This document shows, piece after piece, positions 3,669 through 53,706 of a stretch of 64,000 nt of DNA. The notes under the pieces were generated by a model. The model had not been told where the DNA came from. It was given only the letters and a program-made list of their open reading frames with translations, and did not search any database. A program made the translations under genes and the position numbers. The DNA is taken from the sequence record NC_019405.1; one strand, given 5' to 3'. Position 1 is the first letter of the stretch; each line of letters starts with the position of its first letter.

Positions 3669-3683
3669 GTCGTGAATCTTGAC
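3669..3683 (+). promoter_or_regulatory. Repeated phage promoter/operator motif GTCGTGAATCTTGAC
   Basis: Exact copy in the intergenic gap upstream of the DUF2460 gene; its last 5 nt form a TTGAC -35 box. Confidence 0.7.
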
Positions 3684-3736
3684 GTTCCTGGATGATCGTG
3701 GCATCCAGGGACACCTCCTTTCATGGTTAATGCCCG

Positions 3737-4387
3737 ATGCCGAGCTTCCACGACGTCCTGTTCCCCGAGACCATCAGCTACGGCTCGTCCGGTGGTCCGA
3801 AGTTCAAGACCACGATCTTCCAGGCCGACAGCGGCTTTGAGCAGCGCAACAAGGACTGGAGCGACATCCGCTGCGAGTACGATGTCGCCCAGTCGATCCG
3901 CTCGACCGAGGACATGGACGAGCTTCGCGCCTTCTTCATGGCCCGCAACGGCCGCGCCCACGGTTTCCGCTACAAGGACTGGGGCGACTTCCGCCTCAAG
4001 AACCAGTTGATCGGCGTCGGCGACGGCCTCACCAAGGTCTTCCAGATCGTCAAGACCTATACCAGCGTCGCCCACGACGGCACCGAGTACACCTACACCC
4101 GCACGATCCGCAAGCCCAAGTGGGACTCGATCGCCGGCGTCAAGGTCGGCGCCGTGGTCCAGGTCGCCCCGACCAACTACGAGGTCGACTATTCGACCGG
4201 CCTGATGACCTTCGTCACCGCGCCGCCGGCCGACGCCCCGGTCACCATTGGCCTGGGCGAGTTCCACGTCCCCGTCCGCTTCGACACCGACTTCATGGAC
4301 GTCACCCAGGAGTTCTGGATGCGCGAGACGTGGCCCAACATCCCGATCGTCGAAATCCGTGACTGGCAAGAGGCCCTGACGCCGTGA
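3737..4387 (+). CDS. GTA-like distal tail protein (DUF2460/TIGR02217 family)
   Basis: FHDVLFP..ISYGSSGGP.F.T...SG.EQRN..W and FF.AR.GRAHGFRYKDW.D motifs, plus C-terminal F.VPVRFDTD. Confidence 0.88.
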   Translation: MPSFHDVLFPETISYGSSGGPKFKTTIFQADSGFEQRNKDWSDIRCEYDVAQSIRSTEDMDELRAFFMARNGRAHGFRYKDWGDFRLKNQLIGVGDGLTKVFQIVKTYTSVAHDGTEYTYTRTIRKPKWDSIAGVKVGAVVQVAPTNYEVDYSTGLMTFVTAPPADAPVTIGLGEFHVPVRFDTDFMDVTQEFWMRETWPNIPIVEIRDWQEALTP

Positions 4388-6009
4388 AATCCGTCCCCGA
4401 AGACCTGATGGCGCACCTCCAGGAGGAGGTGACCACGCTGGCGACGTGCATCACGATCGTGCGCCAGGACGGCAAGGCGTTCTTCATGACCGACCACGAC
4501 CGGCCGATCAAGTTCGAGAACCAGACCTACGTCCCCTACGACTCCTACCAGCGCACGTCGATCCTGATGTCGTCGGAACTGGAAGTCGACACCGCCGACA
4601 TCACCGCCTTCCTGACCTCGAACGGGGTGACGCGCGACGACGTCGCCTCGGGCCTGTTCGACTACGCCGCGATCAAGGTCCAATTGCTGAACTACGAGCG
4701 GCCCGAGGACGGGGCGATCCTGCTCCGCAAAGGCACGTTCGGCGAAGTGACCATGAACCAGGACGAGACCTTCTCGGCCGAAATCCGGGGCATGACCCAG
4801 GTCCTGACCTACCGGGTCGGGGAGACCTATGCGCCTGAGTGCCGGGCGGACCTCGGCGACCGCCGCTGCAAGATCGGCCTGATGCCGGAAGAATGGCAAG
4901 CCAACAAATACTACGGCCTCGATGCCTGCGTGCTGGGCGAACTCGTCGCCCCGACGTCGTTCGTCAATCCCGTGGTCGTCAACGGCAACTTCGAGGACGG
5001 CGCCCTCAACGCCGTCGTCACCGCGCCGACGGGCTGGGTGGCCTATGGCGATCCGACTAGCCGCTGGGTCTACAAGCACGACTGGTACAACCTGTCGCGC
5101 CCACAGGTCGGCAACCAGTTCATCGCCGCCACCCGCACCTCGATCTCCGACAAGCAGGAAGTCGCGGGCATCTACCAGGACATCAACCTCATTTCCGCCG
5201 GCGTGCCCGCCGCCGCGATCGACGGCGGCCTCTGCCGCGTGCGCTACAAGTCCTTCGCCGCCTGCCTCAACAACCGCGCCCAGTCGCGCGAACGCCTGAC
5301 CTGCATCAAGGCCGACGGCTCGGTGGAGACGATCTGGGACACCGGCGAGATCAAGTACCCCGAGGATCGCTGGATCGCGGTCAACGCCGACGACATCCTG
5401 ATCCCGGCCGGCACGCGTGTCCTGCGCATCGACCTGTGGTCCAAGAAGCGCAGTGTCCACGAGGAGGGCGCGGCCTATGACGGGATCAGCCTGTCGATCA
5501 ACCTGCCGGCAGGCACCGCCGGCAACGCCCATGTCTATGGCGGGGTGATGTTCAAGTGCATCCAGGCGGGGATCAGTGGCGGCACTCAGCCGGCCTGGAC
5601 CAACGAACTGGGCGCCACCTATACCGACGGCACGGTCATCTGGCAGTGCGTGTCCAACTACAAGAAGGTGGGCACGGTCGCCACGGTCGCCTCCAACAAG
5701 TCGTTCACCTCGACCGACATCACCGAGCCGGCCGGTCACTACGACGGCGGCGTGCTCTACTGGGAGACCGGCCGCAACGCCGGACGCGCCCAGGAGATCA
5801 AGACCTGGGCCGCCAACCTCTTCACGCTTTTCCAGCGCACCTACTATCCAATCACGGCGGGCGACCGCTTCGTGGTCTATCCCGGCTGCGACAAGCGCCG
5901 CGCCACCTGCGCCGACAAGTTCCATAATATCCACAATTTCCGCGCCGAGCCCGACGTGCCCGGTCAGGACATCTACTACCGCACGCCCAACGCTCCGGAG
6001 CAGGAATGA
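4384..6009 (+). CDS. GTA-like tail hub/baseplate protein (DUF2163 + BR0599 C-terminus) with an inserted carbohydrate-binding-like domain
   Basis: N-terminal TTLATC..I.RQDG...F.TDHDR, central CRADLGD.RC, C-terminal GCDKRRATCADKFHNIHNFR.EP.VPG. Confidence 0.85.
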   Translation: MKSVPEDLMAHLQEEVTTLATCITIVRQDGKAFFMTDHDRPIKFENQTYVPYDSYQRTSILMSSELEVDTADITAFLTSNGVTRDDVASGLFDYAAIKVQLLNYERPEDGAILLRKGTFGEVTMNQDETFSAEIRGMTQVLTYRVGETYAPECRADLGDRRCKIGLMPEEWQANKYYGLDACVLGELVAPTSFVNPVVVNGNFEDGALNAVVTAPTGWVAYGDPTSRWVYKHDWYNLSRPQVGNQFIAATRTSISDKQEVAGIYQDINLISAGVPAAAIDGGLCRVRYKSFAACLNNRAQSRERLTCIKADGSVETIWDTGEIKYPEDRWIAVNADDILIPAGTRVLRIDLWSKKRSVHEEGAAYDGISLSINLPAGTAGNAHVYGGVMFKCIQAGISGGTQPAWTNELGATYTDGTVIWQCVSNYKKVGTVATVASNKSFTSTDITEPAGHYDGGVLYWETGRNAGRAQEIKTWAANLFTLFQRTYYPITAGDRFVVYPGCDKRRATCADKFHNIHNFRAEPDVPGQDIYYRTPNAPEQE

Positions 6010-6431
6010 CCCGCGACGACATCGTGACCGAAGCGCGCCGCTATGTCGCGCTCCAAACCCCCTGGCGCCATCGAGGCCGCACCGAACGCGGCCTCGACTG
6101 CATCGGGCTGGCCGTCATGATCTTCGAAAAGTTCAACCTGGAGTATATGGACCAGGACGGCTACGCGCGCACGCCCGACGGCGAGAAGTTCGTCGACGTG
6201 ATCCGCCAGCACATGACCCTGGCCGATCCGACGGCGCTCAAGCCGGGCATGCTGCTGTTGTTCAACGACGATGCCCGGCCCTGCCATGTCGGCATCCTGG
6301 CGCGCCAGCACGGACGCCTGACCCTGATCCACGCGACCGCCGACAAGAAGCGGACGGTCGAGGAAGTCTATGACCGCCGCTATGCCGCCCGGTTCCGCAT
6401 GGCCTTCGATTTCCCCGGCGTTGAGGACTAA
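6006..6431 (+). CDS. NlpC/P60 family tail-associated peptidase
   Basis: PWRHRGR...GLDCIGL catalytic Cys motif, HVGI and LIHA; position matches the GTA tail module. Confidence 0.88.
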   Translation: MTRDDIVTEARRYVALQTPWRHRGRTERGLDCIGLAVMIFEKFNLEYMDQDGYARTPDGEKFVDVIRQHMTLADPTALKPGMLLLFNDDARPCHVGILARQHGRLTLIHATADKKRTVEEVYDRRYAARFRMAFDFPGVED

Positions 6432-6433
6432 TC

Positions 6434-9400: not shown

Positions 9401-9910
9401 CGCTCGATCGAGTTCCAGGCCGAGAACCTCGACACCTCGGGCCAGAACCGCTGGTATAAGGCCGTCGGCTCGGGCATGTCGCTGTTCGAGACCGATCCGA
9501 TCCAGATCAACTACCAGCCCCGCGACCTCATGCCCTACCGCCCGGCCGACATCCGTCGGGCGGTCGCGGGCGGAGACGTCACCGTGACCTGGAAGCGCCG
9601 CACGCGCTTCACGGCCACGCTGAAGGACGGCACCGGCGTGGTCAGCCTCAACGAAGGCGCCGAAGCTTACGAGGCCTATGTGCTCGCCGCACCGTACTCG
9701 GGCGACCTGTCGCGTCAAGACGCGCCGACCGCCTACCGTCGCAAATACACCCTGACGAGCCCAAGCTTCACCTACACGGCGGCCGAGCAGACGGCTGATG
9801 GATTTGACGTGAATCTTGACACTCTGCACGTGGTGATCTATCAGTTGAGTTCGGTTGTTGGTCGGGGTTTCCCCGGCGCGCGCTCGATTGAGTCCTGGCA
9901 GGACTTCTAA
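6434..9910 (+). CDS. Large tail-tip/host-specificity protein (GTA g15-like, Phage-tail_3)
   Basis: STYG..IPEIYGTARVGGNMIWS, PAYRGLCYVVFDDF.LADFGNRIP and C-terminal NLLRGRRGT motifs; 1158 aa. Confidence 0.85.
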   Translation: MAAAIALPIVSAIVSTAISYAFPSDGPRLRDTKVSASTYGNVIPEIYGTARVGGNMIWSKPFTEKKKKKRAGKGGSYYNEYTYYCDFAMAFCRGPVKEVRRIWADGKVIYDTTGGSEVIDNNKYRFRFYPGDEAQLPDSLIVEDKGADYAPAYRGLCYVVFDDFALADFGNRIPQIMAEVYAGDEGGAAITDIVPLPSSPVTGGSYQLGQMMIDADRGYFYLVDPVSNPAGTVLRRFLLANGKEDRREIVSIPQAQFPPSVYDSPELTSVRGVTSKGELLCVFGGVNNYMRIEKLDPYSWQSLGTIGRSYPFEGTPENSLEHSNTNFEISRDEKGNYLCLTLGVFGEYNIFDPSDMSFKAKGDMAGWNGPATPMYICARQGGPATSRRFYHVTYAGGASLQVCSLGEVLYNHPVEFPGNSQTATAWAFWDEGDPGVVFFYSDGPNRYIAKWSESTGVLAWKTQLRNSDPFCGYGVYGLRARIKDNEFHWVYNKHLFSINTATGQWIDRTFDQDFYKSDNDKTAEQVNDGDKGLLLPRDISEDYVIYDPRRNIVICVGQIQGQNGIVHVGGYTGGKTSVGAIVERLLVSTGQMTSNDYDLTPLYDIPVYGYGYASSTDIKSIIAELRNLFMFDLVESDGRLVARVRGDQDPDAEVPWKLLGSQSGPTPDKADYWKETRMSESDLPASIDLTYSNIDDDYNPSTAKSKRIASPVATMLSRQQVKAECNLVMDATEAKNRVNIMLYTQWEERTQHQTALPWLYANLDASDLISVTMEDGRNYFERIGSIEFGADFSSRLETYGTDSGAYLSDKTGDGGGAGRPTVVPAPKPVVGFILNTPLLRDTHDSGGNFSNWYSAIGAGAPGVFLGGTMFKSANAQDYVDLYQEPESAEWGTVMGAVPSPSHGWFALDWETRITITPAVDFFELESITDDELWEGLNLVVIGDEVLQFRDAVQNADGTWTIWNLLRGRRGTQYACDNHKAGERFVFLDERSIEFQAENLDTSGQNRWYKAVGSGMSLFETDPIQINYQPRDLMPYRPADIRRAVAGGDVTVTWKRRTRFTATLKDGTGVVSLNEGAEAYEAYVLAAPYSGDLSRQDAPTAYRRKYTLTSPSFTYTAAEQTADGFDVNLDTLHVVIYQLSSVVGRGFPGARSIESWQDF
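9806..9844 (+). promoter_or_regulatory. Internal promoter in the 3' end of the tail-tip gene (motif variant GACGTGAATC-TTGACA, 17 bp spacer, TATCAG)
   Basis: One-mismatch motif copy with sigma70-like spacing; would drive the downstream tail fibre genes. Confidence 0.55.
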
Positions 9911-16365: not shown

Positions 16366-16404
16366 GTCGTGAATCTTGACATCGGCATATTTCCGGACCA
16401 TAGT
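16366..16404 (+). promoter_or_regulatory. Lysis-cassette promoter with the repeated motif (GTCGTGAATC-TTGACA, 17 bp spacer, CATAGT)
   Basis: Exact motif copy followed by sigma70-like spacing, upstream of the endolysin. Confidence 0.7.
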
Positions 16405-18503: not shown

Positions 18504-18542
18504 GTCATGATCCTTGACAGAACGACGATCTTCGAGTATGGT
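18504..18542 (+). promoter_or_regulatory. Promoter (motif variant GTCATGATCC-TTGACA, 17 bp spacer, TATGGT)
   Basis: TTGACA at 18514-18519 and TATGGT at 18537-18542. Confidence 0.65.
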
Positions 18543-18547
18543 CGCGG

Positions 18548-18840
18548 CTCTTCGACGGCATCCCACCGTCACCTATGGCTCGCGACCCACCGTTCGCAGG
18601 GAGATGCTCGCGACCAAGGCGGTAGCCGGAACGACGCTAGGCTGCAAAGCCAAGCCTCCGGAACACGCAGCAGCCGGCTGGAACGCTAGGCCGTTACGTC
18701 CAAACGGGGCCAGGACCTGTGAGGCGAAAGCCGAAAGGCCCCACCACCCGACAAGGGTTCACGCGTGATGCGGAAGAAGGACGTCAGTCCTGAAGTGTCT
18801 CAGGTGCAGAAGGCCCACCGGTTTCCCGGCGGGCCTTTTT
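18548..18840 (+). ncRNA. Candidate ~290-nt structured ncRNA, family unknown
   Basis: Lies between a promoter and a terminator with no credible ORF; GNRA hairpins GGCT-GCAA-AGCC (18640-18651) and GGC-GAAA-GCC (18723-18732). Confidence 0.45.
18810..18840 (+). terminator. Intrinsic terminator between converging units
   Basis: AAGGCCCACCGG-TTTC-CCGGCGGGCC followed by TTTTT. Confidence 0.8.
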
Positions 18841-18859
18841 CTGGTCTGGGGACAGGGCC

Positions 18860-19660
18860 TTAGTCGACCGCTTCCAGGCGCCGGCGCTTGGGCGCGCTCG
18901 CCGGCAGGGACGGGGCCAGATCGCCGATCTTGCCGACCACCTTGCCGAGGAACACGATCCGCTTGGGATCGACGTCGACATGATCCTTCAAGTCGGCGCT
19001 ATAGACCCGGAACGCGCCACCCTTGGAGGGACGGGTGACGTGCGCGACCTGCATGACCTTGTCCATGCCGTAGACGAACTCGCCGCCGGCGGCGCTGGGC
19101 TCGACATCGCGGCGGACCACCGCCATGTCGCCCGGCTTGAGGCCAGGGGCGAAGTCGTGGATCGGGGCCAGGGCCAGATCGGTCGGCTCGGCCTCGAAGC
19201 GCTCGCGAAGCCAGTCGGGATCGAGGTTCCAGGTCCGGGCGCGCTTGAACTCGCCAAGGCGGCCTTTGAAGGTCACTTCCTCGACCGGGTTGGGCGCGCC
19301 GACCCCGAAGGTGATGTATTCGGGCGTCGTCTTGAGGACGTGGGCGATCTGCTCCAGCACGTCGATGTGCGGCTTGACGCTGTCGGACTCGTACATGATG
19401 TACGCCGTGCGCGCCAGCGGCCGGCGCTCGCCCGCCTGCTTGGGCTCCCAGCCCGGCTTGGTGCTGGTGTCCTTGCGCGAATTGCTCTGTTGGGTCAAGT
19501 AGACCTGCGAGGCCACTTGCTCCTGGGTCATGTCCAGGGCCTTCCGGCAGGCGGTGATCCGCTGCCCGATGGTCTGAGGATGCGCAAGATCGGCATCCTT
19601 GTGGATCAAGGAACGAGCGCGATGGGGCACCATCGGCTTCAGTTCGGCCACGGCTTGCAT
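18860..19660 (-). CDS. XRE-family HTH transcriptional regulator with a degenerate S24-like C-terminal domain
   Basis: IGQRITACRKALDMTQEQVA...YESDSVKPHIDVLEQIAHVLKTTPEYITFG; C-terminal LKPGDMAVV...G.V.G pattern; GGAG RBS. Confidence 0.82.
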   Translation of the reverse strand: MQAVAELKPMVPHRARSLIHKDADLAHPQTIGQRITACRKALDMTQEQVASQVYLTQQSNSRKDTSTKPGWEPKQAGERRPLARTAYIMYESDSVKPHIDVLEQIAHVLKTTPEYITFGVGAPNPVEEVTFKGRLGEFKRARTWNLDPDWLRERFEAEPTDLALAPIHDFAPGLKPGDMAVVRRDVEPSAAGGEFVYGMDKVMQVAHVTRPSKGGAFRVYSADLKDHVDVDPKRIVFLGKVVGKIGDLAPSLPASAPKRRRLEAVD

Positions 19661-19839
19661 TTCGTTCTCCTCCGTCCGTCGGGAACCGCGTCATTCGGTG
19701 TCGGGGTAACACCTGACATTTGCGATGGTTCCACGCCGCAACGTTTCCTTGTCGAAATTGACAAAGAGGGGATGTACACCCTCCTTGGCAACACATCAAG
19801 GCCAGAGATGAAAAAAGTTTGATACTCGACTTTAGGGGG

Positions 19840-24918: not shown

Positions 24919-24956
24919 AGATAGCCTGAGGGGTCCCGAAAGTCAAGATTCACGAC
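24919..24956 (-). promoter_or_regulatory. nrdA promoter with the repeated motif (GTCGTGAATC-TTGACT, 17 bp spacer, TATCTT)
   Basis: Reverse-complement exact motif at 24942-24956 with canonical spacing. Confidence 0.72.
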
Positions 24957-25860: not shown

Positions 25861-25927
25861 GCTCGGCTCCGGTGATGTCGTGTCTCCTGACGATTGATGT
25901 CAGGATTCACGACATCGGTCAACAAGG

Positions 25928-32002: not shown

Positions 32003-32017
32003 GTCAAGATTCACGAC
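32003..32017 (-). promoter_or_regulatory. Repeated motif/promoter upstream of the DEDDh exonuclease
   Basis: Exact GTCGTGAATCTTGAC on the - strand; TTGACA, then 16 bp, then TTAACA. Confidence 0.68.
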
Positions 32018-32025
32018 ATAGAAAG

Positions 32026-32700
32026 TCACGAAGCACGACTCACGCCCTGGGCTTTGATGATCTCGTAGATGCGCTGGGCCGACAGGCTGTAGGCCTCGGC
32101 CAGTTGCGCCACCGGCTCGCCCTTGGCGTAGCAGTCGGCGATCTCGGCGTAGAACCGCTTCTTGGCCTCCTCCCGGCGCAGCTTGGCGTCGGGGGCGTGG
32201 CGGTCGATGAAGCGGTAGATCGCGATCCGGCTGACCCCGTAGTCCTTGGCGATCAAGGGCACGGGCGCGAAGGCGGCGTAGCTTTCGATGATGTCGGCGG
32301 CGTGGTCGGCGAGGGCCATGGTGTTCTCCAGGAGGGCGAGAGCGCGGTCGATCACCACCGCCGCGCGCTTCGAGGGCTGTTTGGTCAGGAAGCCGCAGCG
32401 GCGGCCGGCGGCGTAGGGCGGCTCCAGCCCTTCGCAGAGGTACTGGTCGGCGGTCGGGTCCGCGCGGTAGCCGCCGGCGGCCTCAAGCCACCAGTGGGTC
32501 CCGCCATCGGGGTCGCGTCCGACCATCGGCCGCCAGCCGCCGTCCCAACCGTCCAGCAGATGCCAGAGCGCCTCGGAGGCGACATAGCAGTGCCCGGCGG
32601 TCGGGTTGGAAGCCGTGTACGCGGAACGATAGGGCTCGTGCAGAAGCTCGGGTGTGAGGCTCTTCTGGACCGCGATAAGGGTTTCGAGCGGCGCCTGCAT
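32026..32700 (-). CDS. Hypothetical protein with a C-terminal tandem HTH-like region
   Basis: Start overlaps the polymerase stop; C-terminal IAKDYGVSRIAIYRFI and LAEAYSLSAQRIYEII look like HTHs; internal RBS+ATG (MALADH) may be a second start. Confidence 0.65.
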   Translation of the reverse strand: MQAPLETLIAVQKSLTPELLHEPYRSAYTASNPTAGHCYVASEALWHLLDGWDGGWRPMVGRDPDGGTHWWLEAAGGYRADPTADQYLCEGLEPPYAAGRRCGFLTKQPSKRAAVVIDRALALLENTMALADHAADIIESYAAFAPVPLIAKDYGVSRIAIYRFIDRHAPDAKLRREEAKKRFYAEIADCYAKGEPVAQLAEAYSLSAQRIYEIIKAQGVSRAS

Positions 32701-35991: not shown

Positions 35992-36046
35992 GGCTCTATG
36001 GTTAACGGATGTCGTGAATCACGTCAAGAAATGTCGTCAACGACGA

Positions 36047-36845: not shown

Positions 36846-38549
36846 TTACAGGCGCCAGTGGCGGCCGTTGAAGGTGATCAGCGCCCGCTTGCCATTCGGG
36901 TACTGCACGCAGTGGGTATGCGCCCAGGACGAGGGGCCGGTGTTGTAGCCCATGTCCAGCTTCGAGGTCGTGCCGGTGTTGTAGGCGCTCTCGAAAATGC
37001 CGGGCGAGTGGGTGTGACCGAACGTCACCTTCGGGCCGATCTTGGCGAACTGCTGGATGTTGCCGCGCGAGCCGTTGGCGCCGTTGTGGCCGTGGTTGGA
37101 GTGCTCGACCCCACCGACGACGCAGGTCTCGTCCTCGCGCAGGAACTTCACGCCGTTGCAGTTCCAGACGTCGAAGGCGTTGGTCATCACCTCCTCGAAG
37201 ATCGAGAAGTTCTTCTCGCCGGTCCGGATCGAGGCGTAGACCGCCCGCTGGCAGGAGAGGAAGAACTCGGCGTTGACCGGGTCGGCGCGGTAGTCGGCCG
37301 TCTTCAGCCACTTGTTGAGCGCCAGATCGTGGTTGCTCTCGACCACCGTGACCTTCGAGTCCGGCGCCTGCCGGCCCAGGATGGTCAGGAACATCGCCAC
37401 CTCGCGCAGTTCCTGCTCGACGCTTTCAGAGCCCTTGACATAGAGCCGGAAGCGGTCGTGCGGATCGGCGATGTTGTGGTGGTTGCGCGCCCGGAAGTCG
37501 GACACGTCATGGACGAAGATGTGCTCGGGCCGCAGGACGTCGATCATCGACGGCGTCGCCACGCTGCCCCACACTCGGCTCCCGTCGGCCGAGCGTTGCT
37601 CGGTCGGGAAGAAGCCGAAGGTGGCGGCCGAGACCTCCGGGTCGATCTGGGCGACGTGGATGTCCCCCGGCGTCAGGCAGGACACGCGATGGCCCTCGGT
37701 CACCACGCCGTCCTTGACGAACACGTCCAGATCATAGAACGACCCGTCGGTGTCGCCCAGCAGGTGGCGGCAGAAGAACTTGCCGTCCTCGTCGACCTCG
37801 ACCAGCACCGCGCCCAGTTGGTGGTGGAAGCTGGCCTTGATCCCGGCCTTCTTCGGCACGTAGTTGGGCTTGGTGACCGCGCCCGTCGTCATGATCTGCT
37901 TGGACGGGGTGTGCTTCATCGTCGGGACGCTGACGAGTTGCACCTTGGCGTGCGGGAAGATGCCCCAGCGCTCACGGGTGTAGGAGTGGAAGCCCGACAG
38001 CGGGTTCTCGGCCGTGGGGAGGGTGTTCATCTCGCCGCAGAAGTCGATCCGGTCGGCGATCCGGACGCGCTCGGCGACGAGATATTCCATCACCCGCTTG
38101 TGGAAGAACGCCGCGTGCTTGGCGTGATCCTCGAACAGGCGCTTGGAGTAGGTGAAGCCGGCGATCATGATCTCGCACGGCGCGTCCTGGCGCAGGTGCT
38201 CGGCATAGGCTTCCAGGTTGTCGACGAACCCCTCGTGGATGTGCGTCGAGTCCTGGGCCGAGGACAGGATGAACCGCCGGCGCCCGGTGGTCTCGTCCAC
38301 CGTCACAGTCCGCGCGGCCGGGGCCGGGCGGTGCGACAGCGGGTCCTTGCGCATCGAGTAGAGCCGGTTTTGCAGGGTCGTGCGCTTGACGCTGTACTTG
38401 CGCGAGAACGCCCGTTGACCGCCGGCCTTCTTGACCATCGCGTTCAGTTCTTCCGGGGTCACCGAGTAGATGTCGAAGGGACCCTCGGCCGGCAAGGCGT
38501 CCTTGGGCTTCTTGCCCGCCTTGGAAGCGTGTTCGAACTCAGCCGGCAT
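36846..38549 (-). CDS. Calcineurin-like metallophosphoesterase with an N-terminal HTH-like segment
   Basis: PGDIH, VHDVSDF, ESNHD, NHGH and GHTHS metal-binding motifs. Confidence 0.75.
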   Translation of the reverse strand: MPAEFEHASKAGKKPKDALPAEGPFDIYSVTPEELNAMVKKAGGQRAFSRKYSVKRTTLQNRLYSMRKDPLSHRPAPAARTVTVDETTGRRRFILSSAQDSTHIHEGFVDNLEAYAEHLRQDAPCEIMIAGFTYSKRLFEDHAKHAAFFHKRVMEYLVAERVRIADRIDFCGEMNTLPTAENPLSGFHSYTRERWGIFPHAKVQLVSVPTMKHTPSKQIMTTGAVTKPNYVPKKAGIKASFHHQLGAVLVEVDEDGKFFCRHLLGDTDGSFYDLDVFVKDGVVTEGHRVSCLTPGDIHVAQIDPEVSAATFGFFPTEQRSADGSRVWGSVATPSMIDVLRPEHIFVHDVSDFRARNHHNIADPHDRFRLYVKGSESVEQELREVAMFLTILGRQAPDSKVTVVESNHDLALNKWLKTADYRADPVNAEFFLSCQRAVYASIRTGEKNFSIFEEVMTNAFDVWNCNGVKFLREDETCVVGGVEHSNHGHNGANGSRGNIQQFAKIGPKVTFGHTHSPGIFESAYNTGTTSKLDMGYNTGPSSWAHTHCVQYPNGKRALITFNGRHWRL

Positions 38550-39254: not shown

Positions 39255-39299
39255 GTCAAGATTCACGACATTGACTGTCGTGAGCCACCACGCTAGACA
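39255..39299. promoter_or_regulatory. Divergent promoters sharing the repeated motif
   Basis: Motif on the - strand at 39255-39269; + strand TTGACT (39271-39276), 17 bp spacer, TAGACA (39294-39299). Confidence 0.68.
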
Positions 39300-40276: not shown

Positions 40277-41155
40277 CGTTTTCCGACGGGCTGAGACTAC
40301 ACCCATCAGCAATCCCGCTTCGAGGATTATTCCCCAGGTGCGACCCCAGGTATTCCCTCGACGTCCACCAGACCCCTTGCGGTAGTCCAGTCCGAGATCA
40401 TCGCCGCCGTTCTTGCGCACCCCGAAGGGATTGCGGGTCTGGCGTTTGACCCATCATGGCGAACTACTCGACAGTTCCTTCCCCGCTGGGCTTGCGACCC
40501 ACTCACCGGCGCTAACCGGCTGACGAAGCTCTTCCTATCGACACCTCGCGGGCTTGCGACCCTTGAGATGACTCCGTTACCCGAGGGCCGGAGCATTTGG
40601 CGACTTACGTCCGCCACTGGACCAGTCTTTGCGTTTTTCATCGAAGCGGGGATTGAACCCGCGACCGACAGCTAGGACGGCTGTTGCACTACCACTGTGC
40701 TATTCGCAAACCCACCAAGACGTGCTGGTCCAGTTGTTCCCAGAGCTTTTGACCCCAGAAATGCAACACGCCTCATATCTTTCGCCTTGCGGGCTACTCG
40801 ACTGCTCTTCAGGACCCCGTCTCCCCCGACCTTTCGGCCAGGATGCCCAGCACCCCTCGAACTGAAGCAAAGCTCTTCACCGCGAAGTGTCGAACCCTGC
40901 AACCCAAACGGTTATCCGTACTCCCTAGACGCGCTTGCACGGGATAGTCCGCTTGCGACGGACTGGCGGTTAAAGCCTCGGAGTTACCCCGGCCCCGCCT
41001 TGTCTCCCACGGTCTTCAGGTCTATCCCCTTTTGCAAGAGGCGGCCAGCTTCCCAGCCCGGACCCGTCGGCTTCCTCTGTCCTCTTGCGAGGTCGGGCGG
41101 CCTATGGGAGACCGTCCCTGTCACCCCGTCGCCGGGGCTTTCGTCAGAAGCGACG
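40277..41155 (-). ncRNA. Large (~880 nt) structured ncRNA, GOLLD-like candidate, with an embedded tRNA-like domain
   Basis: Own promoter (41161-41189) and terminator (40242-40276); no credible ORF; many - strand GNRA hairpins (GCAA at 40488-40500, 40550-40562, 40947-40963, 41081-41092; GAAA at 40830-40837). The family assignment is an inference. Confidence 0.62.
40638..40709 (-). pseudogene. Degenerate tRNA-like element (nominal anticodon TCC) inside the large ncRNA
   Basis: D-arm GCAC-AGTGGTA-GTGC, anticodon stem ACAGC/GCTGT with loop CGTCCTA (G33, not U33), T-arm GCGGG-TTCAATC-CCCGC; broken acceptor stem and no CCA. Confidence 0.7.
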
Positions 41156-41275: not shown

Positions 41276-41658
41276 CGGAAATCGTTGTAATTCGGACAAC
41301 GGAACTGGCGGCAAGACAGGGGTGCGAATCCCCTCGCCTCCACCATCGACGCCCGGCGCTGGGAGTACGCGACTCCTGGGCAGGGAGTGTTACCCTGGCG
41401 GGCTGCGGCCCGAGCCAAAGGTAGCCGGGCGTCGTTGATGGGGGCGACTAGCTTTCGATTGGCGCTCGGGACTGAAAGACGCAACGGTGGGTGACCTCCA
41501 CATCGGCTTGCCGGTGATCGGGTCAGGCAACAGTAAATGTCGCCGCCAATGACAACGACGTCGTGGCTTTCGCCTCGGCTCGTGAAGCCATCGCCGCCTA
41601 ATAAGCGGTAGAGGAGCCCGCCGGGAGCTTGGCAACAGAATCCCGGCAACCCCCTTTC
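41276..41658 (+). ncRNA. ssrA: Circularly permuted (two-piece, alphaproteobacterial-type) tmRNA
   Basis: Acceptor piece with T-arm AGGGG-TGCGAAT-CCCCT and CGCCTCC-A-CCA (ends 41345); intervening stem TCGACGCCCGGC/GCCGGGCGTCG; coding piece begins GGGGGCG (41440) giving a G3.U70 Ala acceptor stem; tag frame AANDNDVVAFASAREAIAA then TAA TAA (41542-41604); downstream GGCAACAGAA motif. Confidence 0.92.
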
Positions 41659-45230: not shown

Positions 45231-45245
45231 GTCAAGATTCATGAC
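45231..45245 (-). promoter_or_regulatory. Repeated motif GTCATGAATCTTGAC between divergent genes
   Basis: Exact R=A variant, immediately followed on the + strand by a second TTGACC. Confidence 0.68.
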
Positions 45246-47347: not shown

Positions 47348-47405
47348 CGAAGCGATCCTTGAAAAGGCGGGGGCTGGCGAACCGGCCCCCTGGAGGTGGG
47401 GACTG

Positions 47406-49034
47406 TTAGGCGCTATGCGCCGCGACATAGGCCTTGGCGTAGGCCTCGCGGTAGGCGGCCTCGTGGACCACGCCCGCTTCGTCGGTGAGGTCCTCGAACG
47501 CCTCGTAGTGGACGCCATTGGAGGCGTCCAGGTCGAAAACGCCGTCGAGCCGGGCCTGCTGGGCGTCGGCGCGGCCGTCGATGTCGCCCACGAGCTTGGC
47601 CCAGGCCGCGTATTGCGCCTCGACCACCGCGTCGAAGGCGGCGATGTAGGCGTTGCTCATCGCCGCCTCGCTGTCGAGCGGCGATTCGGTGACGTCGTTG
47701 TAGCGCTCGCCCTCGAAGCCGTCGAGGATATCGACGATCGCGTCGGCCAACGCGTCCTCGTCGGTTTCGGCCATCGCCTCGGCGATCGCCTTATGGGCGT
47801 CCTGCTCGCCCCAGGTCCGAGCGATGCTCTCGCCCAGGACCGCGTCCTCGGTCGGGAAGCCGTTCTCGTCGAGCACCGGATCGGTGCTTTCGGCCGTTTC
47901 TTCGTCCTCGGCTTCGGGGCCGGGGTCGGTTTGCTCGGCGTCAGCCTTGCCGGCGGCGAAGGCCTCGCCATAGCCGCGCACATAGCCCTCCGAGTAGGCT
48001 TGCCGGGCCGAATCGGGGCCGTCGCTGAGTTCGCCCGGCATGTCGAAAGACGCGTCATACTCCCAGCCGTTCTCGGCGTCGGCGGCCCCGGCCTTGCGAC
48101 CAGCTTCTTCGCCGGCCTTATCCCAGTTGGTCTCGACGTCGTCGAACGACACCGACACCTCGGCGGTGGTCGCGGCTTCCGGCGCCGAGGCCGTCACGGT
48201 CACGCCGTCGGCGGCGGTGGCGTCGGTGGCGTCTTCCGGGTCCTCGACCGGCGCGGCGGCCTTCTCGTCGGCGAAGCGGCGCTCGACGGCGGCCGAGAAG
48301 TAGTTCTTGGCGTCGGCCTCGGGGATTTCAGCCAGCACTTCCATCTTGCAGCAGCGCAGCTTGGCTTGGTTGTAGTCGGTCGGGATCGCCGTCACGTCGC
48401 TCGGATTGATCTCGACGATGATGATCTTGCCAACGCCGTTGTGGAACTGGAGCAGGTAGTCGAACGAGCAGGCGTGCAGGCCACGCGAGCAGAGTGCATT
48501 GCGGTTGGGGTCGCACTTGTCGCGGTCCATCTCGACCGTCGAGCCGATCTTGTATTCGACCGTGCCCGAGTGGTGGTCGAAGAAGTCGGCGCGCACGCGC
48601 TTGAAGGCGTGGAAGTTGCCGTCCGGGGTCAGGGGCAGGCGACCCTTCTCCAGGAAGGCGTAGAGGTCCGCCGCGATCGACTTGTCGGGGTTGAGGTGAA
48701 CCTTCTCGATGAACTTGGTCAGCGGCTCGATGTCGAAGCCTTCCGACAGCACGCGCTTGAAAGTGCCGGCCGCCACGTAGTCGATCACGTGGCCGTCCAG
48801 GCGCAGCCGGTCGCGGTCGTCGAGGATGACGCGCCCGAACGACTGGGCCGCGACATAGGCGGCGACGTCGGCGATCAGGCGGATTTCGTCGATGTCCTGC
48901 GGCACCTTGCGCAGGGCTTCCTCCAGCTTCTTGGCCTGGGCCGAGGCGCGGGGGAACACGCGGTAGCGACCATCGAGCGTGATCGAGATCACGTCGTTGG
49001 TGATCGTCGACGCGATCTTCTTGGGGGTGGTCAT
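47406..49034 (-). CDS. rIIB: rIIB-like protein with an acidic C-terminal extension
   Basis: DLYAFLE...LTPDGNFHAFKRV, CSRGLHAC and KLRCCKMEV motifs; follows rIIA. Confidence 0.85.
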   Translation of the reverse strand: MTTPKKIASTITNDVISITLDGRYRVFPRASAQAKKLEEALRKVPQDIDEIRLIADVAAYVAAQSFGRVILDDRDRLRLDGHVIDYVAAGTFKRVLSEGFDIEPLTKFIEKVHLNPDKSIAADLYAFLEKGRLPLTPDGNFHAFKRVRADFFDHHSGTVEYKIGSTVEMDRDKCDPNRNALCSRGLHACSFDYLLQFHNGVGKIIIVEINPSDVTAIPTDYNQAKLRCCKMEVLAEIPEADAKNYFSAAVERRFADEKAAAPVEDPEDATDATAADGVTVTASAPEAATTAEVSVSFDDVETNWDKAGEEAGRKAGAADAENGWEYDASFDMPGELSDGPDSARQAYSEGYVRGYGEAFAAGKADAEQTDPGPEAEDEETAESTDPVLDENGFPTEDAVLGESIARTWGEQDAHKAIAEAMAETDEDALADAIVDILDGFEGERYNDVTESPLDSEAAMSNAYIAAFDAVVEAQYAAWAKLVGDIDGRADAQQARLDGVFDLDASNGVHYEAFEDLTDEAGVVHEAAYREAYAKAYVAAHSA

Positions 49035-49055
49035 GGTCGTCTCCTTGAGACCGGC

Positions 49056-51179
49056 TTAGCTGAACGCCAGGGTGAGCGGGATGGCCTTGATCAGGCCGGG
49101 CAGGGCCTTGATGCAGGCGGTGATCTGCGCCTCGGTCGAGGCGTGGTTCATCATGTCCAGGTACTTCCGGACCGGATGGTTGTAGTGCTTGTAAACCTTC
49201 TGGTGGCCCTCTTCGATGATCTGGATCGTCTTGCTCTTGGGCGGGGCCTTGTAGGAGCCGTTCTCCTCATAGAGCGACTTGAGGTAGGAGCGCTCGCGCT
49301 CGGTCCACTCGGCGATGTTCGCCGCCAGGAACGGCTTGAGCGCCACGAAGAAGGCCGCCAGCGGCGAGGAGGTCATGCGGCCCAGGGCGTCGTATTCCGC
49401 CGGGCAGTGCTTGACCGCGCGGGTGAAGAACCCGAAGGCCGTCGACGAGGAGGAGAACTTCCCCAGCAGATTGACGCACTCGTCGAGCGTGATCTTGTGC
49501 TTGGCTTGCAGGGCCGCGTCCACGGCCGCGCGCAGCGACGGGATGTTGGCCTCCTCGACGTGCTTCTGGGCGGTCGGCGAGGCGATGTAGATGTGCTTGA
49601 TCCCGAACTTGTTGGCCACCACGAAGGTGTCCTCGGGCTTCTTGCGGTACTGGTCCGACGTCACCCAGGCCACGCCGCCGTCGAGATCGGTCTCGACCTC
49701 GACCACCGCCCGCTGCTCGCCCGCCCGCTTGGCCAGGGCCAGACCCCGGATCGGCGGGGTGTAGACCGCCTGCGGCTTCTTGCCCTCGACCCGGCGCGGC
49801 ACCACGCCGCGCAGGTCATCGATGTCGACCTCAACGAACTTGGCCTTCGGCAGGGCGCATTGCCAGAACTTGGCGGGCTTGTCGAACGCCAGCAGGAAGT
49901 CGCCGGACTTCACCTTCAGCTTCTCCTCCAGGTAGAGGCGGAAGAGCCGGGCCAGACGGCGGGTCTCGCTCTGGCTGAACTCGCTCTGCGTCGAGGCGTC
50001 GCGCGAGGGGTCCATCAGGTCGGAGACGTCGCGGATCACGTAGAAGGTTCGCTCGGCGTCATTGTCGAGCGACAGGGTCTTCTCGATGCGGTAGCCCCAG
50101 CGCTCGCGGTACTGGTCGAACGTGGCCTTGTAGATGCACGACACGCCCGAGAAGGAGATGCTGGAGGTGGTCAGGCCCGTCGCCGGATGGGTCACCGACT
50201 TATTGAGGAACTGAGGCTTGAGCTTGTTGTAGGTCTTGAAGAACTCGACCACCGGCTCGATGTCCTTGACCTTGTCCCAGATCACCATCTCGACCTCGGT
50301 GGTGATCTCGCCGATCTTCTTGATCAGGGCCTCGACCGCGTCGGGCTTGTACTGAATCTCTTCCCGCGACGGGATCGGCTCCACCGTGCCGATCGGCACC
50401 GTGATCAGCCATTTGCGGCCCATGTCGTGCGGCAGCGTCAGCCCACCCTTGTTGGCCAGCGGATAGATCACGCAGCCCTGGCGCACGTTCCAGGTCGAGG
50501 GCAGCGACGAATTCTCATAGGCCGCCCAGGTGCCGTCGGTGGCCTCGAACTGCGGGGTCCCCAGGCCCTGTCCCAGGTCAATGTTGGTGTCGAACATCGG
50601 CGAGTAGCCGAGCGCGACGTTGCGGATCGCCTTCTCGAAGGCGGGGAAGTCCTTGGCCGCCACGCCGACCGTGACGCGCACCCCGACCGGCTCGGCGCAC
50701 TCCTCGGTGCCCTGGAGCATGATCCGGGGCCGCCCGCCCTCGCCGATCGCGGCGGTATAATGACGCACCACGTCGCCGTCATAGCAGGACACCGAGAACT
50801 GGCTGGTGTAGGCGAACGGGCTCTTGGAGCCCAGGCCGAAGGCGCCGACCAGATCGTCGGTCTGGTCCTTGTCCGACTCGAACAGCGTCGAGTAGAGAAA
50901 CATCACCTTCTCGTGGTTCATGCCAACGCCGTAGTCGCGGACGTAGAATTCCGGACGCAGTTCGTTCGGAGCGTGGACGAAGAAGGTGCCCTTGTAGCCC
51001 GAAACCAGTTGGGAGTCGTAGGCGTTGGTGGTGACTTCGCGCACCATCGAGCCGATCTTGTCCGAATAGAGGCCGTCGATCAGCATCCGGAAGGCCTTGC
51101 CGGAGGCCTTGATCGTGAACTCCTGCTCCTCCTCGACCCCGATGGTTTCAAGGATGACGGGCTCGGCTCCAAGACGCAT
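49056..51179 (-). CDS. rIIA: rIIA-like protein (N-terminal GHKL/HATPase domain)
   Basis: LYSDKIGSMVREVTTNAYD, VRDYGVGM, STLFESDK and GAFGLGSKSPFAY motifs. Confidence 0.87.
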   Translation of the reverse strand: MRLGAEPVILETIGVEEEQEFTIKASGKAFRMLIDGLYSDKIGSMVREVTTNAYDSQLVSGYKGTFFVHAPNELRPEFYVRDYGVGMNHEKVMFLYSTLFESDKDQTDDLVGAFGLGSKSPFAYTSQFSVSCYDGDVVRHYTAAIGEGGRPRIMLQGTEECAEPVGVRVTVGVAAKDFPAFEKAIRNVALGYSPMFDTNIDLGQGLGTPQFEATDGTWAAYENSSLPSTWNVRQGCVIYPLANKGGLTLPHDMGRKWLITVPIGTVEPIPSREEIQYKPDAVEALIKKIGEITTEVEMVIWDKVKDIEPVVEFFKTYNKLKPQFLNKSVTHPATGLTTSSISFSGVSCIYKATFDQYRERWGYRIEKTLSLDNDAERTFYVIRDVSDLMDPSRDASTQSEFSQSETRRLARLFRLYLEEKLKVKSGDFLLAFDKPAKFWQCALPKAKFVEVDIDDLRGVVPRRVEGKKPQAVYTPPIRGLALAKRAGEQRAVVEVETDLDGGVAWVTSDQYRKKPEDTFVVANKFGIKHIYIASPTAQKHVEEANIPSLRAAVDAALQAKHKITLDECVNLLGKFSSSSTAFGFFTRAVKHCPAEYDALGRMTSSPLAAFFVALKPFLAANIAEWTERERSYLKSLYEENGSYKAPPKSKTIQIIEEGHQKVYKHYNHPVRKYLDMMNHASTEAQITACIKALPGLIKAIPLTLAFS

Positions 51180-51272
51180 GGCAAACTCCGAAAGGCAGGC
51201 TTGAGTGAATGTGTTGCCGATCCTTCTAGCGAGGCGTTCTGGCTCTGTCAACACACTCCAGCCTGCCGGGAT

Positions 51273-51311
51273 GTCGTGAATCTTGACGTTCCGCGACGCC
51301 TGAGGCATGCT
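51273..51311 (+). promoter_or_regulatory. Promoter with the repeated motif (GTCGTGAATC-TTGACG, 17 bp spacer, CATGCT)
   Basis: Exact motif in the divergent region between rIIA and the + strand genes. Confidence 0.7.
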
Positions 51312-51558
51312 CGTATTCATGCGGAACATCACGGCTGAAGCGACGGGCAAGACCCGCACTTGCACGTCCGAGGATTATCCCTGGCCCCCGCGCGGGTCCG
51401 AGGGATGCGATTGCATGGAAAAGTCCAGCAACCCCAAGCGTGACTTCATGCTGATCGCCGACCGCACCGGTGTAATCGTATGGTACGCGAGGATGACATG
51501 CCCGATTCACGGCCCGAAGATCAAGACGTCGGACGTCGCAACCGAATCCACGACCTGA
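51307..51558 (+). CDS. Small hypothetical Cys-containing protein
   Basis: 83-aa ORF; the true start is probably the downstream ATG at 51320. Confidence 0.45.
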   Translation: MLVFMRNITAEATGKTRTCTSEDYPWPPRGSEGCDCMEKSSNPKRDFMLIADRTGVIVWYARMTCPIHGPKIKTSDVATESTT

Positions 51559-51905
51559 TCGTCGGCGACCCTCGGGAGGACGCCCGCTACGCCCGCAAGC
51601 TCAGTAACCGCGACAAGACGATGTTCGTCTGCGGGGTCCTCAACCATCCCGCCTCGGCCTTTGATCTCGATCTCCCGTTCCCGATCGAGGACTGGATCGC
51701 CTCGGACGACAACTCCCTGGTCTGCGCCGGGCTCTACCTGACCGATCTGCGCCTCCAGTTCTACGAGGCCCTGGCGCCGGCCCAGGACGACGAGCAGGCC
51801 TTCGTCCGCCAGGGCGAGGCCGAGTTCTGGTATCACCGCTTCAACGTCATGATCGAGCGGCGCGCCCACGGCGTGCTGGTCACCGACGGGCGCGTCCTCC
51901 ATTGA
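51498..51905 (+). CDS. Hypothetical protein (~135 aa)
   Basis: GAGGA RBS, phage codon usage. Confidence 0.6.
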   Translation: MPDSRPEDQDVGRRNRIHDLIVGDPREDARYARKLSNRDKTMFVCGVLNHPASAFDLDLPFPIEDWIASDDNSLVCAGLYLTDLRLQFYEALAPAQDDEQAFVRQGEAEFWYHRFNVMIERRAHGVLVTDGRVLH

Positions 51906-52276
51906 GCAGCGATCTGCCTCTCTACGATGGCGCGCTGACGGGCAAGCTTGTCGGCCGCTTCGTGCGCGCCGGGCAGGCGTTCGACGTCGTGCGTCCCGGC
52001 TTCGACGCCCAGGGGATCAAGCGCCAGACCTGGACCCAGATCGTGCATGGCGGCGTTCCCGTCTTCGAGGTCAAGGTCCGCACCGATCTCGACAACGTGA
52101 TCGACCGCTTCGACGAACTGTGGGAGCGTCATATCGGCGAGGACGAGGACCTGCTCGCCCGCGCCTTGGCCTCGGTCAAGAAGGAGCGGACCGCCAAGTT
52201 CCGGGATGGCAAGTCGGGGGTCACGCCGGCCCCGACCGTCCATGACGTCCGCATCCCCACCGCCTATAGCGGTTGA
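51902..52276 (+). CDS. Hypothetical protein (124 aa)
   Basis: TTG start overlapping the upstream TGA. Confidence 0.6.
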   Translation: MSSDLPLYDGALTGKLVGRFVRAGQAFDVVRPGFDAQGIKRQTWTQIVHGGVPVFEVKVRTDLDNVIDRFDELWERHIGEDEDLLARALASVKKERTAKFRDGKSGVTPAPTVHDVRIPTAYSG

Positions 52277-52355
52277 CATTTTGTTGGCGTTCGAGGGTTG
52301 ACAGCCCGGATTTCATGACTTAGATGCCTCCTCGACGACAACGAAGGAGGCTCTC

Positions 52356-52982
52356 ATGCCCAAGCGGATCAAAGGCAAGCGCATCGCCCTGCACCGGGCC
52401 AAGGTGCTCGACGCCGACGAGTTCAACAACCTGATCGAGGGCGTGTCCCGTCGCGAGCACGGTCTGCGTGACCGCGTGCTCTTCAAGCTCTCCTTCTATT
52501 GCGGCCTGCGCGTCGCCGAGATCGCCGGCCTGGAATGGCGCAAGCACCTGTTGGACGCCAGCGGTCGTCTGCGCCCCGCCATCCACGTCACCCACGACAT
52601 CGGCAAAAACTCGGTCGAGCGCTTCATCCCGATTGAAGCCTCACTGGCCGAGGACCTGCGCGCCCTGCGCAAGACCTGCCGCGACAACCGCTTCGTCATC
52701 TACCCCCTGCGCGTGACCATGCGGGGCGGCCCGGAGAAGACCGACGCCAACACCCTGGCGCAATACATGCGCCGGACGTTCCTGGAGTTCGGCCTGGACG
52801 GCGCTTCGTCGCACTCGGGCCGTCGCACCTTCATCACCGACCTCGCGCGGAAAGCGAACCTCGTGGGTTGCTCGCTCCGAGACATCCAGGGCATGGTGGG
52901 TCACAAGCGGATCGAGACCACCGGCAGCTATATCGAGACCAGCCGGCAGCAGGACCAACTCGTCGCCCTGGTCCTGCGATAG
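52356..52982 (+). CDS. Tyrosine recombinase, catalytic domain only (208 aa)
   Basis: GLRVAEI (Arg), SSHSGRRTF (HxxR), VGH and TGSY (Tyr); GAAGGAGG RBS. Confidence 0.9.
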
Positions 52983-52991
52983 GAGGGCGCG

Positions 52992-53405
52992 ATGACCTAT
53001 GTCTGCACCACCGAGACCGACGAGATCATCAACGCCCAGCCCGTCGATCTGGACGCGGCCGAGGCCCTGCTGCGTCCGCGTCCGAACTTCGCCAAGGCCA
53101 GGGGCGTCTGCCGCGAGTGCGGCGCGCCCAAGAACGAACGGCGCCTGGGTGCGGACTTCTGCTCGACCCGCTGCCGCTCGGACTTCCACAACCGGGCCAA
53201 GATCGAGGGCGCGTCGCTGATCCACATCGTCAAGCGCTGGCGGCGCTATCGTCGCCCTGGCGACTTCGCCTTGATGACCAAGATGGCGGATGACCTGATC
53301 CGCGCCGACAAGCTCGCCAACCGCAACTTCTATCCCGACCCGCCGGCCACGGCTCACGCCAAGGTCGTCGCCACCAACATCGCCGGGCGCCGCAAGGCCC
53401 GTTAG
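52992..53405 (+). CDS. Hypothetical Zn-finger protein
   Basis: CRECG...FCSTRCR motif; AGGAGG RBS. Confidence 0.7.
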   Translation: MTYVCTTETDEIINAQPVDLDAAEALLRPRPNFAKARGVCRECGAPKNERRLGADFCSTRCRSDFHNRAKIEGASLIHIVKRWRRYRRPGDFALMTKMADDLIRADKLANRNFYPDPPATAHAKVVATNIAGRRKAR

Positions 53406-53419
53406 TCCAGGAGTACAGT

Positions 53420-53674
53420 TTGACCACACCGAACCAAGCCCCCGTCCACACCGTCGAGAGCGGTGGTCACCTCTTCCAGGTCTATGCGGCCCCGGAGAAC
53501 CACACCCACCGCTACATCGGCTATTGCGACGGGGCGATCAGCGTCAGCGGCTCCAGCGTTGACGTCGTTCTGCGGGCCTTGGTGACCAAACATCCGGCGG
53601 TGCGGCCCAGCGGCGAGGTGATCGATTTCACCGCCTATCGCCTCAAACGCCTGGGCGAGGAATTCGCCGCCTGA
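53420..53674 (+). CDS. Hypothetical protein (84 aa)
   Basis: TTG start with AGGAG RBS. Confidence 0.6.
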   Translation: MTTPNQAPVHTVESGGHLFQVYAAPENHTHRYIGYCDGAISVSGSSVDVVLRALVTKHPAVRPSGEVIDFTAYRLKRLGEEFAA

Positions 53675-53691
53675 CGTCGTGATTTAACACT

Positions 53692-53706
53692 GTCATGAAT
53701 CTTGAC
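53692..53706 (+). promoter_or_regulatory. Repeated motif/promoter upstream of the primase-helicase
   Basis: GTCATGAATC-TTGACA, then 18 bp, then TAGATG. Confidence 0.68.

Follow-up and report, generated by a model that had tools for sequence, protein, structure and literature searches.

Several described systems bring a short regulatory site into or close to promoters, namely (i) the middle promoters of phage T4, where the MotA box replaces the -35 element and AsiA is the sigma-remodelling partner, (ii) the site of the CI protein at OR2/PRM in phage lambda, (iii) the Mor/C promoters of phage Mu, which are not known to have a good -35 element, (iv) the GcrA/CcrM promoters of Caulobacter, and (v) the stoperators, i.e., the dispersed repressor sites of temperate mycobacteriophages. 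Here, we describe a 15-base element, GTCGTGAATCTTGAC (hereafter the box), repeated in a stretch of 64,000 nucleotides (sequence record NC_019405.1; hereafter the window) that corresponds at 100% identity to positions 62001-126000 of Caulobacter phage phiCbK (record JX100813, whose gene annotation is used throughout), a window coordinate being the record coordinate minus 62000. The box is fused to the -35 element of predicted promoters and marks a distinct phiCbK promoter class, which serves replication, nucleotide-metabolism, structural and lysis genes; its most likely reader would be a DNA-binding protein encoded by the phage.

A -35 element fused to a putatively phage-read box is a variant of a familiar phage strategy, i.e., a phage promoter class with a box of its own. 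As in T4 middle promoters, a phage-specific box lies in the -35 region of promoters with the host sigma-70 TAnnnT -10 hexamer, and the proposed reader would be made early; unlike in T4, the -35 hexamer of phiCbK is intact with the box upstream of it, not in its place, and the candidate reader, gp148, is without a MotA match by Pfam, PDB profile or fold. With lambda CI, the phiCbK promoters share a pseudo-palindrome of about 15-17 base pairs (bp) touching the -35 element, a possible dual activation and repression, and a possibly CI-like protein encoded by the phage, gp109; they differ in that their dyad is centred some 3 bp nearer the start, so that the site overlaps the whole -35 hexamer, and in that about 20 promoters are concerned, not one control region, in a phage used as a virulent one. 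No autoregulatory copy of the box was found at gp109. As for Mu, a dyad at or upstream of the -35 element of non-early promoters is common to both, and phiCbK gp122 reaches the Pfam Mor threshold, although the box is also present in Colossus and Bertelyvirus, which lack gp122, and in Bajun, where the match to it is weak. Like GcrA/CcrM promoters, those of phiCbK contain GANTC and the phage encodes a GcrA homologue, but both the context and the position of the site are wrong, and in relatives the box persists without GcrA and without GANTC. Finally, stoperators are likewise many copies of a short asymmetric word, placed in intergenic gaps and all oriented with transcription, whereas every phiCbK copy comes with a -35 element, 17 bp and a -10 element, and the copies precede operons instead of punctuating them.

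Work on the Caulobacter cell cycle relies on phiCbK as its standard phage, yet the promoters of the latter are described neither in its genome paper nor in other searchable papers. The motif is mentioned neither in that genome paper nor in the XRE time-course paper (PMC10688885) or the CtrA paper (PMC9437464), and a literature search with a part of it, GAATCTTGAC, together with topic searches, returned no description.

Anatomy and distribution of the box promoters

Six exact copies of the box are present in the window, and four others differ from it at one position; these ten are referred to as the strong copies. Up to three mismatches, 17 matches are found, compared with 1.40 +/- 1.11 expected from 100 shuffles. 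An earlier examination of the window from its letters only (hereafter the sequence-only reading) had placed all copies at the right coordinates and on the right strands. Out of the eight it took as exact, six are so (3669+, 16366+, 24942-, 32003-, 39255- and 51273+), the other two (45231- and 53692+) reading GTCATG, that is to say one mismatch, and being exact only if the motif allowed R at position 4; the near copies it listed are all present, 9806+ and 25899- with one mismatch and 18504+ with three. As to its view that all copies but one are intergenic, eight of the ten strong copies lie entirely in intergenic DNA, which in the phiCbK annotation accounts for 7.9% of the window (P = 6e-8), with two exceptions, namely 9806, in the final 105 nucleotides (nt) of gp099, and 51273, within a doubtful 45-codon open reading frame, gp139. 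As it also recognised, the copies point to the downstream gene, which is the case for all ten strong ones, the distance from box end to start codon being 31-162 nt.

Promoter anatomy was deduced from an alignment of 21 phiCbK sites taken genome-wide, where the column counts are G1 21, T2 19, C3 21, G4 16, T5 20, G6 21, A7 21, A8 19, T9 20, C10 21, T11 20, T12 to C15 21 each, and A16 16. The box thus ends in TTGAC in 20/21 sites, followed by A in 16/21, and a weak TAnnnT hexamer stands exactly 17 bp past TTGACA (A in 15/21, last T in 14/21), so that both the -35 box and the -10-like hexamer of the sequence-only reading are real. Because TTGACA, a 17-bp spacer and a weak TAnnnT hexamer come together, the sites are predicted to be sigma-70-type promoters (sigma-73 in the host) with TTGACA as their -35 element; a simple promoter scan calls two of them, with 10/12 matches. 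Relative to the start so deduced, the upstream ten bases, GTCGTGAATC, would occupy about -45 to -36, and a GANTC site contained in the box about -41 to -37. GANTC is depleted in the whole phiCbK record (303 sites vs about 688 expected from base composition), and 12 of the 85 GANTC sites of the window are found in the box context TGAATCT.

With at most one mismatch, the box occurs at record positions 19453, 22396, 25477, 30465, 33212, 47394, 53089, 56755, 65669, 71806, 78366, 86942, 87899, 94003, 101255, 107231, 113273, 115692 and 200176. These sites, about 20 genome-wide, precede the portal, capsid, tail, lysis, nucleotide-metabolism, replication and terminase modules. The term genome-wide, used for the motif in the sequence-only reading, calls for a restriction, all copies being limited to 19-116 kilobases (kb) of the record plus the single one at 200 kb. 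Across the whole phiCbK record, no box with at most one mismatch was found at 116-200 kb, a region of small early genes including tgrL and that of the GcrA homologue, nor in the terminal repeat. The early region (record 113-197 kb) carries instead a second class of promoters, made of 16-22 copies of GTGTTGACA, 17 bp and a TAGAAG-like -10 element stronger than that of the box promoters, and it is for this reason that the box is predicted to mark a separate, non-early class. In the early class, a leader box, CGACGACA, is conserved directly before the ribosome-binding site, where it may act in RNA stability or translational control, and the class with its leader box also occurs in the metagenomic relatives L254, L256, L258 and L259. 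That this leader box could be a half-site for the same protein as the -35-fused box was rejected, as it remains unchanged in lineages where the latter differs. Of note, the second promoter class was absent from the sequence-only reading, as were the GANTC site and two helix-turn-helix (HTH) proteins considered below, gp122 and gp126.

The upstream half of the 15-mer appears to behave like a protein half-site. Over the 30 nt that precede each of the 21 sites, the hexamer GTCGTG/CACGAC is found 6 times vs 0.47 expected (P = 1e-5), and three of these extra hexamers stand at an identical 7-bp spacing, one in the window (39277) and two at sites outside. At the promoters themselves the two arms, GTCGTGA and TCTTGAC, pair at 5/7 positions, and to describe the box as one mismatch away from a perfect inverted repeat was too generous. 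Fuller palindromes exist where no -35 element constrains the sequence: at 36011, which had been taken for a half-site and is in fact an almost complete palindrome, GTCGTGAATCACGTC, arm pairing reaches 6/7 within the promoter spacer of gp124, and in Colossus the site orthologous to 25899 forms a 15-bp palindrome without any mismatch. Another fuller palindrome lies just downstream of an early promoter at record 137896.

The box promoters are also where TTAACC words, often in the form TTAACCAT/C, cluster: 13 of the 48 copies of the genome lie at -60 to +80 of the 21 sites vs 0.68 expected (P = 1e-13), namely near window positions 3669, 24942, 25899, 32003, 39255 and 45231 as well as at sites outside the window. 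They are mostly located between the -35 element and the start, and at some sites supply the -10 element. On sequence, these words resemble CtrA half-sites, and the 8-mer TTAACCAT/C is one that we take to be linked to CtrA/SciP.

Lineage-specific boxes in related phages

In CcrRogue, the box is kept at orthologous places with diverged flanks. In more distant relatives, the core AATC-TTGAC is conserved, with ATTC or TTTC replacing AATC in some lineages, but the 3-4 upstream bases are changed, uniformly within each genome. Thus, the box of Colossus is TGCCAGGAATCTTGAC at five places, with close variants elsewhere; those of Bajun are CGTCGTGAATCTTGAC (five copies), CGTCGTCGATCTTGAC (five copies) and CGTCGCGAATCTTGAC (two copies), in the forms CGTCGTGAATC, CGTCGTCGATC and CGTCGCGAATC; that of Bambus is TGACGTAAATCTTGAC (three copies, form TGACGTAAATC); that of CcrBL9 is GTGACG..(A/T)TTCTTGAC, with two free bases after GTGACG; and four metagenomic lineages have another form each. 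Between the copies within a genome, spacers and flanks are unrelated, and recent duplication therefore cannot explain the identity of the boxes.

The phages phiCbK and Colossus, which both infect host strain CB15, have different boxes. Since a reader supplied by the host would not keep two boxes in phages of the same strain, the most economical reading is that of a phage-encoded protein co-evolving with its site; a host factor, still counted among the candidates in the sequence-only reading, becomes unlikely.

As regards Colossus, gp133 (positions 18983-19837 of its sequence, L121), just upstream of the endolysin promoter, is annotated as "RNA polymerase alpha subunit C-terminal domain protein"; such a phage-borne version of the polymerase segment that contacts DNA upstream of the -35 element could bear on promoter reading. 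Besides, at about 26165-26179 of L121, upstream of the gp109 orthologue, Colossus has a near-palindrome of the phiCbK type (half-site GTCGTGA), unlike its own promoter boxes.

Beyond these phages, a scan of viral contigs recovered the exact word in multiple copies only in three phiCbK-like contigs of about 220 kb, the other matches being single and attributable to chance. Among the matches listed by an exact-match scan of bacterial genomes, scattered single ones were seen, at about the chance rate, which is uninformative for Caulobacter chromosomes. A contig of 3477 bp (L191) from an Opitutaceae metagenome-assembled genome has two exact 15-mers about 590 bp apart; although binned to a bacterium that is not a host, the contig probably derives from a phiCbK-like phage and was placed in the wrong bin.

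Candidate readers and rival explanations

The sequence-only reading had left the choice between the operator of a dimeric regulator and an extended promoter element. The observations agree with a mixture of both, with the -35 region of a promoter class next to an upstream part that looks like a protein half-site, and the words dimeric and operator are retained as suppositions. As the likeliest explanation, about as probable as all others together, we propose that this promoter class is read jointly across the Dolichocephalovirinae: the host RNA polymerase would read TTGACA and the -10 element, and a co-evolved, sequence-specific protein encoded by the phage, most likely gp148, would read the fused upstream ten bases. 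Made from an early promoter of host type, gp148, possibly with gp149, would adjoin sigma region 4 and, once the early genes have been expressed, turn on the box class; at promoters with a fuller palindrome in the spacer, it would instead act as a repressor. We lean to activation at the box, with repression where a full palindrome is inside the core promoter, because the regulator would be early, the non-early -10 element is weaker than the early one, and such is the usual logic of a lytic phage.

Out of the three HTH proteins named as candidates by the sequence-only reading, the winged-helix protein gp148 (57961-58560, +) fits best, gp109 is possible and gp149 is set aside as reader of the variable bases. 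As best candidate, not proven, gp148 has homologues in 49 phage records covering every lineage sampled, and a host-type (GT)GTTGACA promoter, of early type each time, stands before its orthologue in 9/9 lineages read; in phiCbK, the early-type promoter GTGTTGACA for gp148-gp150 lies at 57904-57912 (+). The family is closed, with 40 members of about 200 residues, all at expect values (E) below 1e-17, in a search of 1.84 billion representatives. The gp148 model is a winged helix (predicted local distance difference test, pLDDT, 83.6), for which the leading Foldseek match is ZitR (6fi9; E 2e-4 to 6e-4), followed by MexR and PadR; as template-modelling (TM) scores are only 0.3-0.47, this MarR/PadR match covers the core only, and by sequence gp148 is below the Pfam MarR threshold (12.9 bits vs a cut-off of 24.6). 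In the family of 47 sequences, the exposed positions of the recognition helix, 104-106, 109 and 112, are the most variable columns (3.1-3.6 bits), whereas conservation is highest in the C-terminal region (1.79 bits). Depositors of the Brevundimonas phages named the gp148 orthologue 'middle transcription regulatory protein motA'. This identity was rejected: no MotA Pfam family was found in 11 members at E up to 1, no MotA chain appeared in PDB profile searches, and with Foldseek, run on two models, the 50 matches listed each time contained no MotA either.

As for the other proteins, gp149 (58562-58978, +), an HTH_3 protein always paired with gp148, was rejected as the reader of the variable bases, since its recognition helix hardly changes between lineages whose boxes differ. 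The XRE HTH protein gp109 (18860-19660, -) is a possible alternative reader; it scores 29 bits with HTH_3 and matches the repressor family phrog_4 at E 6e-12, its C-terminal part looks S24-like, and in this repressor-like, by eye only, and it is found in 4 of the lineages read. A C-terminal HTH of the Mor family makes gp122 (32026-32700, -) another candidate, with a marginal match to Pfam Mor PF08765 (25.9 vs 24.9 bits) and matches to late-activator PHROGs. By tblastn, it occurs only in Shapirovirus and Poindextervirus, apart from the weak match in Bajun, and the genes found in syntenic position in Colossus and CcrBL9 bear no relation to it; the box architecture persists in relatives without a gp122 match. 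The last candidate, gp126 (36846-38549, -), is a metallophosphoesterase like A1 of phage T5 with an additional N-terminal HTH (see also Gill 2012): it aligns with T5 A1 ('DNA transfer protein') only from residue ~74, its first ~70 residues forming an extra HTH that is common to other alphaproteobacterial phages and absent from T5-like phages.

Several points weigh against a phage activator, and against gp148 in that role. Promoters that depend on an activator seldom combine a consensus -35 element with 17-bp spacing, the -35 element would be covered by a symmetric dimer bound to the 15-mer, which looks more like repression, and MarR-like proteins are mostly repressors. The name MotA given to the gp148 orthologue is unsupported. 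No clean residue-to-base code for gp148 emerged from 10 lineages; the helices of gp109 and gp126 vary with phylogeny as well, and the residue-to-base comparisons of gp126, gp109 and gp148 all track it, leaving the candidates not separated. Lastly, the text of an infection time course reports replication genes as early and structural and lysis genes as middle to late (McLaughlin 2023; PMC10688885), and the box alone therefore sets no single timing.

The strongest rival, which we nonetheless rate as unlikely, is that the box promoters are strong promoters of host type silenced by a phage repressor, the possibly CI-like gp109 or gp148 acting negatively, for which the pseudo-palindrome over the -35 element would be the operator. 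Replication, structural and lysis genes would then stay silent as long as a deferred or episomal state lasts, or up to the point where the repressor is titrated out. The perfect TTGACA with its 17-bp spacer would suit such promoters, as would the palindromes in promoter spacers and the one just downstream of the early promoter at record 137896, and candidate repressors are gp109, which matches phrog_4 and is found in 4 of the lineages read, and gp148, by a fold like that of MarR/PadR repressors. Moreover, relatives persist as episomal pseudolysogens (PMC12195562) and a state of lytic deferment has been proposed for phiCbK (PMC9437464), but the pseudolysogens are without superinfection immunity (PMC12195562), and a repressor made after entry cannot block a first round of firing. 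The right arm of the box, TTGAC in 20/21 sites, is not the complement of the half-site, which shows that selection acts on the contact with sigma and not on operator symmetry. Against gp109 in particular, phiCbK and Bajun have nearly identical boxes but different exposed residues in its helix.

Less likely again is the absence of any dedicated reader, where the upstream bases would be an extended -35 element or an UP-like contact for the host RNA polymerase and the differences between lineages would result from drift by way of promoter cassettes. AATC-TTGAC(A), common to most lineages read (ATTC/TTTC in some), speaks for it. A reader common to both phages in the host, however, would not keep different, internally uniform boxes in two phages of the same strain, recent duplication does not explain box identity amid unrelated spacers and flanks, and the extra half-sites and spacer palindromes would be left without a role.

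Dependence on methylation, the GAATC of the box being a CcrM-type GANTC site where the phage GcrA homologue gp222 would activate when methylated, is poorly supported and very improbable: GANTC (GAATC or GATTC) is indeed present in 19/19 of the phiCbK sites that differ from the box at one position or none, GcrA serves as cofactor of sigma-70 where promoters are methylated (PMC4647560), and GcrA homologues are found by tblastn exactly in the two genera with the exact box, Shapirovirus and Poindextervirus, but TGAATCT (reverse complement AGATTCA) ranked 32/32 among contexts for host GcrA, which favours YGAKTCK, host GcrA sites lie near -20 and at +2 to +30, not near -40 (PMC4647560), an earlier screen of these phages did not detect any preferred position of GcrA sites (PMC9437464), and Bajun, Bambus, Colossus and CcrBL9, with no GcrA match (tblastn, E 1e-3), keep the box architecture, GANTC being in only about half of the copies of such relatives and in none of Bambus.

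Returning to a phage-encoded reader, a wider proposal can be made, though we hold it as tentative and rather doubtful. In this proposal, gp148 would found an uncharacterised family of winged-helix proteins confined to the Dolichocephalovirinae, acting as middle/late activators that read a -35-fused box without displacing sigma; helix and box would have co-diversified into a private promoter code for each lineage on a shared host, and the enrichment of these promoters in TTAACC(AT) words of CtrA half-site type would link the class with the host cell cycle as well as with the deferred or episomal states reported for these phages. Matched variants of box and protein form a natural series for the study of co-evolution between a transcription factor and its site. 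With the two-class promoter map, the infection time course already published can be read directly, and a small set of testable regulators is named; if box promoters were also gated by cell-cycle factors of the host, this would bear on lytic deferment and episomal persistence in this phage subfamily.

Individual promoters and neighbouring features

Beginning on the left of the window, the exact box at 3669-3683 (+), with its -35 element, is the predicted promoter of gp096 in the tail module, 53 nt before the start codon, and is kept at the orthologous place in CcrRogue. The copy at 9806-9820 (+), with one mismatch (GAC...) and its -35 element, lies in the 3' end of gp099 and would serve the tail genes gp100-101; the same variant is found in Rogue, with related boxes at orthologous places in Colossus, Bajun and Bambus. 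At 16366-16380 (+), an exact box with -35 element is assigned to the lysis cassette (endolysin gp104), where the promoter scan calls a sigma-70-like site with 10/12 matches and the blastn match to Rogue begins precisely at the box.

After the lysis cassette, a degenerate box without GANTC, GTCATGATCCTTGAC, at 18504-18518 (+), belongs to a putative TTGACA-17-TATGGT promoter. Between it and a terminator at 18812-18835 lie about 300 nt devoid of annotation (window 18519-18848, +), which this promoter would drive and in which blocks of sequence are conserved in Rogue, Bajun, Bambus and Colossus. The region may represent a conserved non-coding RNA; comparison with Rfam gave no matching family, and the fold energy is unremarkable (z -0.96).

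On the - strand, the exact box with -35 element at 24942-24956 is the predicted promoter of the ribonucleotide reductase operon (gp112-110). The orthologous promoter has the box proper to the lineage in Colossus, Bajun and CcrBL9, that of Bambus being only loosely similar. The variant GTCGTGAATCCTGAC at 25899-25913 (-) may lie in a promoter spacer, because a separate TTGACC stands 3 nt upstream of it. The exact box with -35 element at 32003-32017 (-), accompanied by a weak tandem copy at 32025-32039, would drive the exonuclease gene gp121.

The near-palindrome at 36011-36025 is situated inside the 17-bp spacer of a putative leftward promoter, TTGACG ... TAACCA, of the cytosine methylase gp124; it is kept in Rogue, a related arrangement exists in Bajun, and its position looks operator-like. 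Further on, the exact box with -35 element at 39255-39269 (-) is assigned to gp127-124; 7 bp upstream of it, at 39277-39282 (-), is the extra inverted half-site, CACGAC on the promoter strand. Helicase gp131 would be served by the box with one mismatch (GTCATG) and -35 element at 45231-45245 (-).

The exact box with -35 element at 51273-51287 (+), predicted to serve gp140-145, is back to back with a promoter of the contrasting early class at 51246-51254 (-), made of GTGTTGACA, 17 bp and TAGAAG, for rIIA/rIIB. Both overlap the annotated 45-codon gp139 (window 51201-51338, +), which is probably not a gene. The last copy, at 53692-53706 (+), again with one mismatch (GTCATG) and a -35 element, is assigned to gp146, and at the orthologous place three metagenomic relatives (L254, L258 and L259) have boxes specific to their lineages.

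Two structured RNAs unannotated in the record were also detected with Rfam, namely a GOLLD RNA at window 40288-40774 (-), scoring 165 bits vs a threshold of 150 bits and enclosing the annotated tRNA-Gly, and a permuted transfer-messenger RNA (tmRNA) at window 41283-41601 (+), scoring 71 bits.

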